Part shown: positions 24,192 to 34,130 of the stretch, in pieces
Layout of the letters: each line of letters begins with the position of its first letter
How positions within the stretch are numbered: the first letter of the stretch is position 1
DNA from: Parasitella parasitica NRRL 2501
Taxonomy: Eukaryota; Fungi; Mucoromycota
Reading direction: 5' to 3'
Assembly (NCBI GenBank): GCA_025201805.1
Contig: MU619257.1
Location: 74,615 to 138,614 of the forward strand
Length of the DNA: 64,000 nt
The notes under the pieces: model-generated
What the model was told of the DNA's origin: nothing
What the model saw: the letters and a program-made list of their open reading frames with translations, nothing else
The model's database searches: none
Position numbers and translations under genes: made by a program

Positions 24192-26655
24192 ATGACAGAC
24201 GAATACTTGCTGGAAGACAACAAGAGCTGCACTACAACCACAACCACCACTACAAGCGCCACTACGGCCAGAAAAAACAACCAAAACACATTCTCGTGGT
24301 CTTCAACAAGCTCGTCGTTTTCAAATTCAACGCTACTGACACATGAAGACGGCGCACAGGAGGACGAATTCTCTTCGTTGTACTTGTTGGAGTTGGGCGA
24401 ATTTTTTGACTTGGCAGATAGCGACAAGAAGGAAAAGAAGCTGAGTGAAATACTAGGTCGAGCTGCTTCTCATGGAGACATCCAAACAGTGCGACAGATT
24501 ATCATGGATGAGAGACTGCGTCCGTATTTGAATTTGGATGCATCAGATGATGAGGAAAACGACGGCTCGACACCGCTGATATACGCAAGCTGTTTTGGTA
24601 AGCTGGATATTGTGAAATACTTGCTTCAAGTGGGCGCCAAAGTCGATGTGCAAGACAAAAGTAAGCGTGGCTCTCCCTCTCTGAAATATGCATGAATTTC
24701 TAATCAAATTATAATAGTCGGCTGGACTGCTCTCATGTGGGCTACAGCAAACGGCCACCACCAGATTGCACAAGTGCTGCTGGAATACAGTGCCTCCTCA
24801 GAAACCAAGTCTGCAAGTGGTAGGACAATATACGAGCTAGTCGACATTGAAAACAAAAATATGGTCAGCCTTCTGAATGAGAGAAGGCCCCAGGAAGCGC
24901 AAACACAATTACAACCACAGCCCATCACTGCCATCGATGCCGAAAATCACAGCGACCTTTTGCACTGCGAAGAAAGCTTTCGATCTGTGCACAAGTTCAG
25001 CTGGGACCAATGCCTACCAGACCAGATGTTTGTATTTGCTGAGCAAGATGTAGACCATATATTAAATGTAGCCATATCAAATTTAAAACTGCCCATCAAA
25101 TCGAGATCTGAAATTTACGTTCCTGCCAATGTCATATTCCTGTCCGCAAGGTTTGCCCACTATTTCACCAGCAGAGAGTTGGTGCATGAATTGCTGTCCA
25201 AAGCAGTACAAAAGATTGAATGTGTAGTCAAGGTTGGTATTCGCACAGGTCCATTTCAAAGTCTGATTTACTAATGGCGCACAGTCAAATGCAAGCGATA
25301 TCCACACGCAGGCTTTCTGGATTGCAAATCTGTCTCAGCTGTTGTATTACCTGAAAAAGGACTCTGGACTTGTAGTTGCAACAGCAGAGCACCAGTTAGA
25401 AATATCCGAACTTATTTCAGAAGCGTATACTTTACTCGTGCTTGACTCTGAAAAGAGAATGGACCGCATATTGGAGCCAGCAATGGTCGAGTTTGAGCAG
25501 ATTGACGGCCTTCAAGTCGTTGAATTTGCTAATGATTGGCATCGATTCTTCCGTCGTAGCAGATCATCGCCACCAAACAGGAGGTCGTTTGGAAATACTA
25601 GCGGAAACGATTCAATACAGGCATCCTTACCACCGCAACAGCAGCAGCAACAACAGCAGCAACAGCAGCAACAGCAACAGACAAGAGCCACCTTGTCACC
25701 ACAATCAATTACATCACTGATGACCTCTATTCTATATGTGCTACAGTCATACGACGTGCATCCAGTTATAGTGATTCAAGCAATGGCACAACTGTTTCAT
25801 TTTCTGTCATGTGAAGTGTTTAACCGCATACTGTTCAACAAGAAACATCTATGCAGATCAAGAGCGTTGCAAGTTCGCATGAATTTGACGGTGGTTGAAG
25901 AGTGGATTCGAGAGCATCACCTTCCAACCACGTTGGGGGCATATTTTAACCCTGTTGTGCAGTTGGTTCAGTTACTGCAATGCGTGTCCCAACTGACAGA
26001 CCTCATGGATTTCATCAACACAGTCAAAGCGTTCGATCTCTTGAACCCTATGCAAGTGAAACGTCTTGTCCTCAATTACCGCTATGAGGTCGCAGAACCG
26101 AAGCTGCCAGAGGAAATCGAAAAGTACACAATGCAGATTGCAGAGGACACGCTAAAGAGCCTTCAAATGGAAAAGCAGCAGGAAGAAAAGAGATCTATAG
26201 ACACGACTAGCAGCAGACCAAACAGTATATCCAGCCTAGGCAGCTTGCTCCTGTACAGCATGTCGCAGCAAAGGAGAAGAAAGTCCAATGTTAGACTGTC
26301 TGTGCAAAGCCTGGAGATAGCGGCACCTGCGGACGACGATACATGTTCAGTACAGAGTTGTGATGATGATTCGGCCAATAGCAGAGAATGGATCATTGAA
26401 AAACGGGATTCTAGATATATGCTCCCATTCTCACTGCCCACCACCACCAATATGGTGCACTCGGGGTGGAACAAAAAAAACGCTCAGGAACGAGAATTAC
26501 CAGCGAGAAACATGAGCCTGTCAGACAGCATCTATTTTGAACTGAAGCACAAAATGTCGGTCGAACGAGAAAAGAGTATGCGAGAAAGAGGCATTGTACC
26601 ATCAATACCAGAGGAATGGCTAGAAAGGTTAGATTACCACACAGGTCAATACTAA
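24192..26655 (+). CDS. Ankyrin repeat + DIL (dilute) domain protein
   Basis: ANK repeats (GSTPLIYASCFGKLDIVKYLL; GWTALMWATANGH), FSWDQCLPDQMFVF, DIL motif FNRILFNKKHLCRSRALQVRMNLTVVEEW. Two introns. Confidence 0.88.
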
Positions 26656-26996
26656 TAAACCCGCACACACAACCGATTCTCCTTTATTTTTTTTCATTTT
26701 TTTTTTTTCATTTTTTTATATTTTCCCTCCTTGAAAATTTATATAAAATTTACCCCTTTTTTTATGGTTGTTCCGAGTAGTTTATTCACGCTGCACTGTC
26801 TTTCTTTTTATTGTTATTTCCCTTTCTCTCTTGTTCTACTCTTTTCTCTCTCTCTCTCTCTTTCTCTCTCTTTGCCAAATAATTATNNNNNNNNNNNNNN
26901 NNNNNNNNNNNNNNNNNNNNNNNNNNNNNNNNNNNNNNNNNNNNNNAAAAAAAAAAAAAAAAAAAAAAAAAAAACTAATAAAACTATAGCATAAAC

Positions 26997-29900
26997 ATGG
27001 CACACCAAAGTGTCCTCGACGATTCCTTTTATAACTCGCTGGCGTTTGGAAAGTTGCTAGTCGATGACTATTACAGCAACATAAACCAAACAGACAATAG
27101 CACAGTATACATCACGCCCAGATACAACACAACAGACAGAATCGAGCTTAAAGTAAATGATATGCCATGGCTGTTAAAAGCTGTGTATACTCACTCTCTA
27201 AAACCACAGATTGGCGTCTTGCTGCCCTTTACCCAAAAGGATGATAACCTAACAGCGCAGATTGTTTGGGGGTAATACAATATTCACATTTCATGCAGAT
27301 TAAATACGAGACTAACACGCCTCAAGTGGAGCTTCGGCAATTCGAATGGCCGTCAACGATATCAACAGTAGACAAGTGATACCTGGTGCCTACATTACGC
27401 TGATTGAAAAGGACTCGTTTCCTGATCCATCGCTTGATCAGATGTCTGTTACAAATGCAGTGTATGCGTCGGTTACGCTGCTCCAGGAAGGCGTCATTGG
27501 TGTGATTGGCGATATCTCCAGCTCTTGGACTTCGCTCAGTGCTCTCATGACCTCGACATTGGATATCCCTCAATGCTCATTCACTGCCAACGCGGTCGCC
27601 TTCTCTGATAAAACCCAATACAAGTACTTTTTTAGAACCATCCCCACCCAAGTCATCATTGCCGACGCCATGCTTTCGTTTGCATCCAAGCAAGGCTGGG
27701 ACAAAGTGGGCGTGCTGTACACCGACGATCCGCTAGGCCAGCAATTCTACCAAAGAGCGTTGATCCAAGCAAGCGCCATGGACCTTCGTATCTTGCAGTA
27801 TCAAGCAATTGCAGCCACAATCGCCGCAGACGACATCACAAACGCATTGAGAAACATCACAAATGGCGGCGCACGCATCATCATGGTTGCTGCAACTGCA
27901 ACTCCACAGAGCCAGATCATGCTAATGGCGCATGAAATGGGTCTTATTACCAGCGAGTATGTGTGGTTGATGATGGGCGACACCACCGAAGAATTGCAGA
28001 CCGCAGTGGATAGTTACAATCAGAACCACACCATGAAACAAATTGATTTTGCAGCCGATTACCAAGGCCTCTTTTTGTTTGATAACTGGCTGTCCTTGGA
28101 CGGCTATCCCCCGTTCGAAAGCTTTCTAGATCAGTGGGCAATGCTGAACCCTCAGGCCTACCCGTACGCTGGCCGTAGAAACATCTCGTCCTATGAGGGG
28201 TATAAAAACGAATACACACTGATAAGGAATACAAAGAAATTAACACTGTCTATAGCTTAGCATACTCATGCATGATGATTATGGCTGAGGGCTTTGGAAA
28301 ACTGATCAATGATAGCCCAAACAAAACGGAAGAGCTATTTAAGCTGTCTACGGGTCAATTGGGCGAGGAAATGCTGCCAAGCGCATTCAACACTGGCTAT
28401 GTTGGGCCTGAGGGACCGATGGTATACGATTCTAATGGTGATCTTACGACAGGGTAAAGTTTTATCCATGCCTCCTATTTCTTCAATTATTTCTAAATTT
28501 AAACACCCAGGAATTACTTGGTGTACAATCTGCAGCACGGCATCAAAAATGTGGTTGGCAAGAGCACTGGAGGTGTTCTTAACATGACGGCGCTGCCCAT
28601 GTTTTTTGATGGCACAAGTCAGGTAGAACAAAATAAATACAAAAATCTCCTTATCTCTCAACATAACACGGTTACAATAGCCCCCTCTTGACTCACCACC
28701 GAGCGTATCTTTGAACCCAGATATTAGCTCTCCTATTTCCCATGCCATATTGGCCTTGTCTTCTGCTGGCATTCTCTTCTCGCTCGTGTGTTTCTTTGTC
28801 GTCTTGCTCAACAGAAAACACGAAATATTCAAGGCATCAAGGTAATGTAGCATACATACTTGCACATACATGGCGTCATTCTGTATTCACACCCTCTTTT
28901 TCATATAAACAAGCCCCCTTTTTTGCTGTTTGGAGCTTGTCGGTTTTATTCTAACCTATGTTTCTGTTGTTATGATGATCGGCATCCCCTCAGAAGCCTC
29001 TTGTATTGTGGCACCTGTGACATTTAGCTTAGGCTTCTTACTAGTTTTAGGGTAAGGCAATGAATGAATTATCGTATGATTCAAGAAATATTAACACACA
29101 CACACACACACACCCCTGAAATCTGCCATTTAGAAACATGATTGCCAAAAACTACCGCATTTATCGGATATTCAACAATATCTTCATCACAAGAAATGTC
29201 ATCACAGATACGCACCTAATTCAAACGGTACTAGGCCTGGTTGGCATTGAGCTGGTCATTCTAGTTGTTGGCTTGATTGTGACAAAACCGTTGCCAACAA
29301 AGTCTCAAGTGTCCTTTTCGAGCCACTACTGGACCTGCGAGCCCCAAGGGAGCAACAAGGTTGTGTTTCTGGTTTTATCTACCATTTATGCAGCTTGTCT
29401 ATTGTTGTTTGCCACGTTCTTGGCCTACAAAACTCGTTTTGCTGGCAGACAGTACGCCAGATACAGCGAATGCAAGCAAATGGGTCTGTCCGTATAGTAA
29501 GTCCTTTTTTTTTTTTTTCGTAATACATTGCAATGTGACACTGACGCTTTTGTTGTTTAGTAATATTCTATTTTCTGCTCTGGTTGGATTTGCTGTCATT
29601 GTAAATCCCCTGGCTGATTTCTATACAAAATACTACATTGAAGTCATTTCCGTCCTATGGGCCACTAGCTTCTCATTGCTGATTCTATTCTTGCCCAAAT
29701 TGCAGGCATTTTACAGATTTAAAATCAAGGAAAGAAAGGAAGAGTTGGAGAAAATGCAACAGGAAAAATCCCACCACAGTGCTGCATCACAGCAAAATCG
29801 AAAAACCATTTTCTCGTTTCTTAAAGCATCCAATAACTCAAACTCGAATTTCTATGGTAACCACCATACTGATTCGCGCCACAATCAGATCGGTGGCATC

Positions 29901-30713
29901 AGTGAGCTCCTTAGCCTGGAGCAGATTTTGGCCTCAAATGACCCCGTATTGGACGACGATGATAATAGTTTGCGTAGACGTAAGCCGAGCGCAATTAGCA
30001 CTACAACTACAACAGACAAAGGCGGAAACAGTAATTTTATTGAAGTCCATGAAGGTGAAATGCCAATCAGAAAAGTGTTTCGCTACTTTCCCTTCCTGTC
30101 GCAATGGGAAATGCATCACATTATGGTGTTTCCATGGCTGGGTTACTTTTCACATTTTTCTGTAAGTGCAAAGAGTCATATACCATACATCTCTCTAACA
30201 CATCATACACAGAAACATGCCAAGAAGGGCACAGTCATGTCCTACCAACAAGCATCGATATTTTCAGCTAAACTTGAAGACTATGTCCTCAAGATTCACG
30301 GGCAAGGGTGGCACGACATGTACATTCAGCTACCGAACGTGAATGCATTAAATACATGGGAACAATGTTTCAATCAAAAGAAAGCAGATTATCTTGATTT
30401 TAGACGCAAACCAAACAACGACACAACAAGAGCGGCAGCGAACGGTGGAGAGGCCACGAATGACGGAGAACAAGAAGTCCTCCGCTCACTCGACATCAGT
30501 CAGCACCCTCACGATGATACAATGCTGTTGGAATCCACCATGTCTCAAGATTTATTACTGAGGAGAATGAGTGATCCTTCTGAAGAGGACATAAGTAACT
30601 CAAATACTGTTACAAATGTAACAGCTGCANNNNNNNNNNNNNNNNNNNNNNNNNNNNNNNNNNNNNNNNNNNNNNNNNNNNNNNAACACTACATTATTTA
30701 TTCAACAGTTTAA
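26997..30713 (+). CDS. Class C (GABA-B-like) GPCR: Venus flytrap domain + 7TM + C-terminal PH-like domain
   Basis: IGVLLPF...AIRMAVNDIN, GVIGDISSSWT, QCSF...FSDKTQYKYFFRTIP (ANF receptor). 7tm_3 motifs IFKASSPFFC, AKNYRIYRIF, AYKTR, ECKQMGLSVY, LFLPKL. About 9-10 introns. Both ends abut N gaps, so the true start and stop are uncertain. Confidence 0.9.
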
Positions 30714-32455: not shown

Positions 32456-34130
32456 TTATTCTAATTGCGACGAAGTAACCTCTAAAAAGTCTGTGTTTGC
32501 ATAGATATTCCTAGACTGTGAACGTGTTATTTACAAATGCATGAAAAACAAGTGGGCTTGTTGAATTACCATTTGCCAGATCTGCACGACATTATCTTCT
32601 GCTGCACTGGCCAATACCCATCTATCTGTAGGATTCCAACTAAAGTCAGAAATTCGGCTTGTATGACCGCTGTGAACAAACTGGATGCCAATAAAGTTAA
32701 GATTTAATCCATGGAGCATGCATGCGTGTTGTTTACCATAATTTCTGGTGGTCCATCTTCAGCGTCTTCTGGTGTCTGTTCTTGTCCAATATGTCGCAAA
32801 TCCCAAATAACAATTCTACGATCTGTACCTGCTGATGCTAAGATAGGGTCATCATGGGGACTCCAAGCAACTTGCGTGATTTCCCCCTCATGCAGTTCCA
32901 TCGAATGCAATTTTGTATCAATTTTACGAATATCAAATAAGCCAACGGTCTATGCAGTTGGTTAAAAATTTGGCTTCACAATCACACCATTCTTACACAC
33001 ACACACACACACACAATTTATACCTTGTCTGAACTGCCTGTTGCCAACATCCAGTCTTTATTAGGATGAAACGCTACAGAGTTAATTTCGCCTTGATGTG
33101 CTTGCACTCGCTGCATTGGTTTAGCAGGGTCACGACAATCCCAACTATAATAAAACCTTGTTAGCTGCCTGTTTCCTTGTTTGCCTTACAACACCCTTAC
33201 ATCATTAATTTCATATCGTCAGCTACAGATGCAAATAGAGAATCGTTGGCTGAATTCCAACTAACATCCTACATGCCATTGCATGCACCCAATCGGATAT
33301 GAGTTAGTATCATTATTACACTATTTGCACAATCAAGTTACTTGTTTACCTCCACACAACCCGTATGACCCTCATATCTATGATAGGGCTGTAATTCCCT
33401 ATCGCTATTTGGTGTAATACCAATATCCCTGAAATAGCATTAGATACAAGGTATAATAACTCCCTCCCCAAGGCACACTTACCAATGGCATATCAAATTG
33501 TCAAATCCAGCACTAAGCAAGTGGTTCTTTTTTGAAATATGAGGATTCCAAGCCAGACCATAACCCTCCATTTCATGACCTTTAAGTCGTAGCATGGGTT
33601 CACACGTTTCTGTTTGAGGTTTCGTTCGATCAAACACGAGAACATCGCCATCCCGTGTCTTTGTTGCAAATATGTCAGGTTGGTGAGGTTGGTAACGTGC
33701 CTTGTTCACTTCGCCTTGGTGGCAAATCCTTTGCGTTATGTACATCTTGGTCTTTTGCTCTTCTGGCGTATCCAATCCTTTTTCTGGGATGTCAATGTCT
33801 AGATATTGCGCATAGTTGTCTTCTTCGTCGTTTGTGTGTGTTCCAATCAACAGTTCTTGTGTGATAAAACCGTTTTCACTGCTGAGTAGGTTAACCGACG
33901 ATGATGTCTACACATAAAAAAAAAAATACTTACACGCTTCTTTTAGGGAGCCATTGGCAGGTCAGAGTGGGCCATGTAAGGTTATGCGTAATTACCATGT
34001 CATACAAGACGGGTGCTGTCTTTTTCCATTGAGCGTAATCCTCCAAGATGCGCTTTTTCTCGTCTTCGTTATTGTTTACTATATGAGTGTGTGGGGGTTG
34101 GTAATCTATTTGTTTGCTATACCTATTCAT
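32456..34130 (-). CDS. RBBP4/Hat2/Msi1-family histone-binding WD40 protein
   Basis: [63 protein letters not shown]|[17 protein letters not shown]. Seven introns. Confidence 0.92.

Follow-up and report, generated by a model that had tools for sequence, protein, structure and literature searches.

A divergent PH-fold domain predicted in the cytoplasmic tail of a class C receptor from Parasitella parasitica

What does a fungal G protein-coupled receptor (GPCR) of class C carry behind its last transmembrane helix, and what could that part of the protein do? The question was raised by a gene in a 64,000-nucleotide stretch of the Parasitella parasitica NRRL 2501 genome (Fungi, Mucoromycota; GenBank assembly GCA_025201805.1, contig MU619257.1, positions 74,615 to 138,614 of the forward strand). 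This whole stretch is the window analysed here, and positions given below without a contig name refer to it. An initial annotation of the window had placed a receptor gene with an apparent C-terminal pleckstrin homology (PH) domain at 26997–30713; gene and tail motif were found where it had put them, with the Pfam exon scan, the introns and the orthologues in agreement. The product is a class C GPCR, and residues 847–945 of its tail (30036–30161 and 30213–30383, forward strand) are modelled as a genuine, very divergent PH-fold domain. Our preferred reading, to which we assign a probability of roughly 0.6 with the fold included, is that this domain would serve as a docking or adaptor module tethered in cis, with a non-canonical binding face.

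Receptor core and fold of the tail

The receptor core was identified with Pfam scans, in which single exons of the window served as queries. Whole-protein scans were run on two public proteins, P0098, a hypothetical protein of P. parasitica that NCBI marks as partial, and the orthologue P0023; the joined translation of the exons was used for frame checks and protein comparison. In P0098, ANF_receptor matched residues 76–439 (2.1e-43), Peripla_BP_6 matched at 7.5e-17, and 7tm_3 (PF00003) covered residues 482–734 at 2.5e-45, scoring 155.5 bits against a curated cut-off of 33.5. The Venus-flytrap ectodomain is encoded by exons 2–5 (27210–28622, forward strand), where ANF_receptor matched the piece 27328–28197 at 4.9e-36, and the whole ectodomain contains ten N-x-S/T sequons. 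A PPLDSPP stalk and the 7tm_3 domain follow in exons 6–8 and the start of exon 9, which begins at 29561 (together 28681–29699, forward strand). Pieces of 7tm_3 colinear with the profile were found exon by exon in 28681–28839, 28915–29049 and 29135–29494, and a hydropathy scan gave seven hydrophobic segments between residues 485 and 735. The Cys-rich NCD3G domain was absent from both the exon-wise and the whole-protein Pfam scans, and the PPLDSPP stalk contains no cysteine. The gene product thus belongs to the class C (glutamate/GABA-B type) GPCRs: a Venus-flytrap domain that can be N-glycosylated is joined by a short Cys-free stalk to seven transmembrane helices. Flytrap, stalk and helices are as the initial annotation had described them.

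In sequence comparison with solved structures, P0023 scored best with GABA-B2 (6.9e-26) and the metabotropic glutamate receptor mGluR1 (7.1e-24); for the flytrap alone the nearest solved relatives were T1R3, the plant receptor GLR3.4 and mGluR1/5. The likeness to GABA-B and mGluR receptors lies in the flytrap and the 7tm_3 core, and GABA-B receptors also lack a Cys-rich domain between the two. In lobe 1 of the flytrap (27480–27640), the sequences G-V-I-G-D-I-S-S-S-W and S-F-T-A-N..S-D-K-T-Q-Y-K-Y-F-F-R are close to amino-acid-binding motifs of mGluR, T1R3 and GLR3.4. The Ser motif of this lobe is kept. The conserved Thr of G-A-T aligns with Asn in the window's receptor, and the other orthologues compared have Ser, Thr, Gly, Ile, Val or Trp at this position.

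The tail was searched and folded with an in-frame intron read through, which added 17 residues to the query. AlphaFold2, run with a 62-sequence alignment, returned a mean predicted local distance difference test score (pLDDT) of 82 and a predicted TM-score (pTM) of 0.71, all five models falling at a pLDDT of 81–82. Core blocks reached 94–97 and the beta1–beta3 strands 94–96, with low values confined to the intron-encoded loop and the ends. The model contains strands at query positions 17–27, 37–44, 49–54, 78–91 (a hairpin), 94–101 and 105–111 and a helix at 114–124, that is, seven strands and a C-terminal helix, followed by a second short helix. The N-terminal half of the domain (30036–30161, forward strand) would hold beta1–beta3, with the beta1–beta2 loop R-Y-F-P-F-L (30081–30098) and the invariant W870-x-M872; the C-terminal half (30213–30383, forward strand) would hold beta4–beta7 and the capping helix, with K915-x-H917-G918 (30291–30302), D923, Q927 and W937 (30357–30359). 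The helix tryptophan W937 was invariant in 27 of 27 full-domain sequences.

Structure comparison of this model pointed to the PH fold by two independent routes. Among the Foldseek matches listed from the PDB, almost all were PH domains, led by GRK2, ArhGAP27 and kindlin-3 (best E 7.7e-4). VIA-align, which is independent of Foldseek and was run against 48,161 representative chains, ranked the PH domains of ArhGAP9 (Z 11.5, root-mean-square deviation (rmsd) 3.2 Å over 100 residues) and beta-spectrin (Z 11.2) highly. It placed 100 chains at Z ≥ 8, and the best 50 of these 100 were almost all PH or PH-like; classical PH domains outscored PTB, EVH1 and Ran-binding domains by 1–2 Z units. Seven strands with a Trp-bearing helix had been read from the sequence by the initial annotation, and AlphaFold2, Foldseek, VIA-align and hhalign agree with that reading.

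The hhalign comparison set a 27-sequence tail profile against an alignment of 13 PH domains, taken as intact Pfam-PH matches from the same genome. The score was 28.6 (P 7.8e-5), and the match ran in register from the E-G at the start of the domain to the helix tryptophan, Trp on Trp. Column shuffles of the profile scored 10.7 ± 2.3 with a maximum of 17.7 (0 of 100 reached 28.6), and the reversed profile scored 9.1. Protein-language-model neighbours, taken as leads only, were PH clusters, at 0.90 for the window copy and 0.92 for the intron-less paralogue L002. The alignment-based model, the structure aligners, the profile–profile match and the language-model neighbours therefore lead us to regard the tail domain as a genuine divergent PH fold. 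In common with classical PH domains (PF00169; ArhGAP9, beta-spectrin, ArhGAP27, Osh3, Sin1 and Akt) it is predicted to have the seven-stranded sandwich and the capping helix with its Trp, at Z 10–11.5 and an rmsd of about 3 Å over 90–100 residues, but it lies below every Pfam PH threshold and lacks the basic beta1/beta2 signature. The receptor tails further differ from classical PH domains in their R-Y-F-P-x-L loop, in K-x-H-G at the beta6–beta7 turn, and in being found only fused to class C receptors.

Occurrence among fungal receptors

A phmmer search of the tail against 1.84 billion representative proteins returned 62 proteins at E ≤ 1e-3. All named relatives were Mucoromycota, comprising many Mucorales together with Umbelopsis, Bifiguratus, Calcarisporiella and Gryganskiella (Mortierellomycotina). 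The long relatives all carried ANF_receptor and 7tm_3, with the domain 80–180 residues past the seventh transmembrane helix (TM7). Four tail-bearing proteins without 7tm_3 were considered as free-standing PH proteins and rejected as such, because each is a split gene model with an ANF/7tm_3 model immediately upstream. In the 32.8-Mb assembly that contains the window, tail matches and 7tm_3 loci number four each, and every 7tm_3 locus is closely followed, downstream and on its own strand, by one of the tails. Wherever the PH-fold domain was examined, it belonged to a class C receptor locus.

The three paralogous receptor loci with a tail domain are located at 79855–81523 and 128150–129533 on C77, the two lying about 47 kb apart, and at 331997–333541 on the minus strand of C6. 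Of these paralogues, L002 lacks the intron within the PH-fold domain, L003 has it with stop codons, and in L004 it is possibly in frame.

For a wider survey, 69 class C receptors were collected through their seven-transmembrane region and scanned with a local hidden Markov model (HMM) of the tail. Of the 40 Mucoromycotina receptors it matched 37 at E ≤ 1e-13; among the three that it missed, two were short or truncated models (724 and 629 residues) and one was a 950-residue Jimgerdemannia protein with a different ectodomain. Mortierellomycotina receptors gave weak matches, four of which spanned the full length at 22–32 bits, and none of three chytrid receptors matched. Conservation of the tail in orthologues was found for the Mucoromycotina, more weakly for the Mortierellomycotina, and in 0 of 3 chytrids. 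The Mortierellomycotina receptors P0133–P0162 are 1,300–1,800 residues long and show a weak match, often to the N-terminal half of the tail HMM, right after the seven-transmembrane region, with long extra tails; from these sequences, insertions may interrupt their PH-like domain. The precomputed Pfam annotation placed a PH domain in 0 of the 69 class C receptors, and in a Pfam scan of the 62 tail relatives PH appeared in one member alone, at E 0.081.

A class C receptor was found earlier in Rhizopus oryzae (PMC3251606), and those of early-diverging fungi have been designated 'class 16' (PMC12842992). No ligand, partner or phenotype has been assigned to the fungal glutamate-type (class XVI) receptors (PMC13308352, PMC12842992), and according to a 2026 review experimental data are lacking for every fungal class C GPCR, G-protein coupling included (PMC13308352). 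The surveys cover N-terminal domains or Pfam content and mention no C-terminal PH domain (PMC3251606, PMC12842992, PMC13308352). The fungal class XVI surveys rely on Pfam, and the tail domain is consequently invisible to them. Our literature search yielded no description of a PH domain on a class C or 7tm_3 receptor, and the one paper found to mention both 7tm_3 and 'pleckstrin' applies the latter word to the DEP domain of GPR155; the statement of the initial annotation that it knew of no characterisation of this architecture agrees with the literature searched. We regard the architecture as undescribed rather than undiscoverable, as public structure predictions of orthologues would show the fold. 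The tails constitute a lineage-specific PH family below the detection limit of Pfam, and a conserved module on nearly all Mucoromycotina receptors offers a concrete handle on how class XVI receptors signal. Several of the Mucoromycota that carry these receptors live as opportunistic pathogens or mycoparasites and have tractable relatives, for example Mucor lusitanicus.

Binding face and possible roles

The beta1–beta2, beta3–beta4 and beta6–beta7 loops form the open end of the PH barrel, which is its ligand-binding side. In the family conservation table, the invariant or near-invariant positions are P856, R/K862-Y-F-P865-x-L867, W870, M872, F878-P879, Y883-F-S885, G894 and Y899 and, in the C-terminal half, L914-K/R915-x-H917-G918, D923, Q927, L934, W937 and F941-N942. 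A basic residue occupies position 862 in 96% of members, position 915 in 100% and positions 892/893, in the beta3–beta4 loop, in about 55%. By analogy with other PH domains, the conserved R/K-Y-F-P-x-L, the beta3–beta4 loop's basic residues preceding its invariant Gly, and K/R-x-H-G are inferred to cluster at the open end of the barrel. We propose that the PH-fold domain, which is separated from the seven-transmembrane domain by a low-complexity linker of about 110 residues, would be kept close to the inner membrane face, and that through its basic-plus-aromatic open-end surface it would bind a partner protein from the receptor pathway, an anionic membrane interface, or both.

Several points weigh against this proposal, some of them already against the fold. 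Pfam PH models gave no match at E ≤ 10 on P0098, on the intron-less paralogue or on P0026, a fragment made up almost entirely of the tail. A phmmer search with the tail returned nothing from the PDB sequences at E ≤ 10, and the tail-only alignment, in which mainly the C-terminal half was modelled, gave nothing but chance matches when used as a profile against the PDB. The hhalign probability for the tail against PH domains was 61%, a modest level of support. The sequence that was folded still contained the 17 intron-encoded residues in the beta3–beta4 loop, and the conserved residues were assigned to one face by PH topology. At the other end of the protein, no signal-peptide-like hydrophobic stretch was found in the modelled N-terminus (MAHQSV...; highest 10-residue hydropathy in the first 40 residues 1.16), and the 5' end of the gene may therefore be incomplete.

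A contrary reading denies the domain altogether: the tail would be sequence of a 3' untranslated region or wrongly annotated, and prediction would have produced the PH model as an artefact. Single-sequence AlphaFold2 was indeed poor, with an unusable pLDDT of 37, and Pfam finds nothing in the tail. Yet the reading frame is open over 1027 codons, protein-level conservation extends to the Mortierellomycotina, the intron is removed exactly in orthologues and in an intron-free contig (L039), confidence in the alignment-based model is high, and three lines of evidence, independent of one another, indicate PH. We consider this alternative largely refuted and very improbable.

The familiar role for such a fold would be that of a phosphoinositide sensor, in which the tail recognises PI(4,5)P2, PI(3,4,5)P3 or a related phosphoinositide and thereby gates or localises the receptor. 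The PH fold itself speaks for it, as do the basic residues at 862 (96%), 915 (100%) and 892/893 (about 55%) and the presence of lipid-binding PH domains with a non-canonical site (ArhGAP9, beta-spectrin, Slm1) among the best structural matches. The register of the hhalign match, however, shows the PH beta2 motif W-K/R-x-R replaced by W-E/D-M-x in the receptor tails: W870 is followed by E or D in 78% of members, then by an invariant Met and a variable residue. The K-Xn-(K/R)-X-R signature is absent. The basic pair of beta1, R858/K859, occurs in one clade only and is Q, V or H in the paralogous clades, and across the family the domain's net charge runs from −6 to +4. The beta1–beta2 loop, moreover, is aromatic and hydrophobic and modelled with high confidence, not basic and flexible. 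Most PH domains are not known to bind phosphoinositides with specificity. The missing signature, together with a net charge near neutral, makes a classical phosphoinositide sensor unlikely, and the phosphoinositide binding suggested by the initial annotation is not expected in its canonical sense. The docking proposal accordingly includes no specific head-group pocket, as the canonical signature is missing.

The second binding partner suggested for the tail was the G-beta-gamma dimer, which the domain would bind as the PH domain of GRK2 does, and the receptor would in this way capture or present the dimer that it releases. PH chains of GRK2 lead the Foldseek matches (E 7.7e-4 to 1e-2), a partner from among the G proteins is plausible for a GPCR, and the second short helix after the capping helix recalls extended PH helices. 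These Foldseek values are nevertheless marginal, with TM-scores of about 0.5, and in VIA-align GRK2 ranked only 50th (Z 8.7), behind many unrelated PH domains; phmmer against PDB sequences found no sequence similarity. GRK2, too, places a PH fold at the cytoplasmic face of GPCR signalling, but it is a soluble kinase recruited in trans, and the resemblance of the tail to it is no better than to many other PH domains. We regard this specific partner as improbable.

A third possibility is that the domain acts in assembly or trafficking, in dimerisation or in control of exit from the endoplasmic reticulum, like the C-terminal coiled coil of GABA-B, and not in signalling. Class C receptors are obligate dimers and the GABA-B tail is used for quality control of the heterodimer; the four paralogues of this genome could pair, and conserved acidic and di-leucine-like motifs flank the domain. 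PH domains, however, are not typical dimerisation modules, and the long flexible linker suggests a module that reaches out rather than a rigid interface. We give this role little credence. The tail also differs from that of GABA-B in having a folded PH-type domain where GABA-B has its coiled coil. A coiled-coil-like stretch had been proposed for the 16 charged residues after TM7, KIKERKEELEKMQQEK, and was rejected, being short and poorly conserved among orthologues.

Animal class C tails carry a coiled coil (GABA-B) or are bound in trans by a PH-like EVH1 adaptor (Homer). The tails of mGluR1/5 contain a Homer-binding peptide, while the fungal receptor carries a PH-type domain in its tail. Homer thus brings a PH-like-fold adaptor to a class C receptor tail, and EVH1 domains matched the model at Z 9.2–9.4, but Homer binds its PPxxF peptide in trans, whereas the fungal fold belongs to the receptor chain and lies closer to classical PH than to EVH1.

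A wider and tentative interpretation, which we hold to be possible and rather doubtful, is that the Mucoromycota class C receptors are non-catalytic 'GPCR-bigrams', in which the PH-fold domain is a built-in transducer or regulator that upon activation would directly capture one of several partners (a subunit of a G protein, a small GTPase or an effector) or the membrane interface, replacing trans adaptors such as Homer, GRK or arrestin. If this were true, it would be a signalling solution specific to one fungal phylum, as opposed to the trans adaptors on animal class C tails. Oomycete 'GPCR-bigrams', 7TM-RGS proteins and GPR155/LYCHOS (DEP) likewise join a seven-transmembrane part and a C-terminal intracellular module in one chain (PMC6033456; PMC12716839), but their seven-transmembrane parts are not of the class C flytrap type, and the modules that they carry are catalytic, RGS or DEP domains. 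The fused types listed in those two papers do not include a class C receptor joined to a PH-fold module. GPCRs with a fused cytoplasmic signalling domain form a short list, which the present receptor extends by a new type.

Gene model and flanking sequence

The receptor gene occupies 26997–30629 on the forward strand, with ten exons (26997–27152, 27210–27271, 27327–28199, 28256–28453, 28511–28622, 28681–28841, 28914–29051, 29134–29496, 29561–30161 and 30213–30629) and 1027 stop-free codons up to an assembly gap. All introns are of the GT..AG type and measure 51–82 nucleotides. The ATG of exon 1 (26997–27152, forward strand), which encodes three N-x-S/T sequons, is the start of the public model, and the ten-exon model agrees with P0098 at 1015 of 1015 residues. 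The introns proposed in the initial annotation are all retained in this model, and one was added to them. A 57-nucleotide, in-frame and stop-free intron (27153–27209, forward strand; GTAAAT..CACAG) lies inside what had been taken as exon 1. It was found by comparing the N-termini of orthologues, which read ELK|IGVLLPF without its 19 residues, and its removal makes the model identical to P0098.

The 51-nucleotide in-frame, stop-free intron at 30162–30212 (forward strand) lies within the PH-fold domain, in the beta3–beta4 loop, and has a GTAAGT donor, CTAAC at −18 and a CAG acceptor. It had been proposed in the initial annotation, and its 17 encoded residues are exactly absent from six orthologous proteins. 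The Logan contig L039 (SRR24685106, 2.9 kb) carries an uninterrupted receptor open reading frame (ORF) of 561 codons that is gapless and colinear over six predicted junctions, including this one, which fits a spliced transcript. Within 71–2824 of L039, the 3' part of the receptor and a WD40 gene form two convergent intron-free ORFs 3 nucleotides apart, and the contig was probably assembled by merging transcripts whose 3' ends overlap. Many ORF fragments of other species break at the position of 30162–30212, which indicates that the intron position is old.

At its 3' end the ORF enters an assembly gap (30630–30684) while still open. P0098 stops 12 codons short of the gap. The Mucor circinelloides orthologue P0097 (87% identical) ends about six residues beyond the last readable codon of the window, and the gap would therefore hide only about six residues of the extreme C-terminus and the stop codon. 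The gene end at 30713 given by the initial annotation was not upheld: its stop at 30711–30713 (the reading HYIIYSTV*) lies beyond the gap. The PH-fold domain (30036–30383) is unaffected, since the gap begins 246 nucleotides (82 codons) downstream of it.

At the 5' end, the missing signal peptide is shared by most Mucorales orthologue models, of which a few truncated or variant ones reach a hydropathy of 1.6–2.4; in this the Mucorales models differ from animal GABA-B and mGluR receptors. Models from Calcarisporiella, Bifiguratus and Jimgerdemannia have an N-terminal hydropathy of 2.4–3.8 and a clear signal peptide, as does one Phycomyces paralogue. Upstream of the ATG are a 60-nucleotide gap (26887–26946, at a distance of 51 nucleotides), an in-frame TAA (26979–26981) and a possible acceptor (tatag) ending at 26989. 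A 5' exon may be missing from the receptor model and from all these Mucorales models.

The cytoplasmic linker comprises residues 735–846, about 110 residues (29700–30035, forward strand), and has no Pfam family above cut-off. It consists of a charged juxtamembrane stretch (29721–29768), a low-complexity region rich in Ser, Thr and Asn, ELLSLEQIL..DDDD (29910–29972) and RRRKPS. The acidic E-L-L-S-L-E-Q-I-L..D-D-D-D and the R-R-R-K-P-S that follows it are conserved on the N-terminal flank of the PH-fold domain. The tail behind the domain (30384–30629, forward strand) contains the conserved S-Q-D-L-L-L-R-R-M-S-D..S-E-E-D (30543–30572), in which an R-R-x-S site of basophilic-kinase type is followed by acidic Ser sites. 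Judged from their sequence, both flanking motifs are candidate regulatory or sorting signals.

The receptor is preceded by a DIL-domain gene (25342–26655, forward strand; PF01843, 3.5e-29) and followed by a convergent gene of the WD40 histone-binding type (33479–33850, reverse strand). The same order of DIL gene, receptor and convergent WD40 gene was observed in Hesseltinella (L038), and L039 likewise joins the receptor to a convergent WD40 gene. In Mycotypha (L037) the WD40 gene also adjoins the receptor, but lies upstream of it on the same strand.

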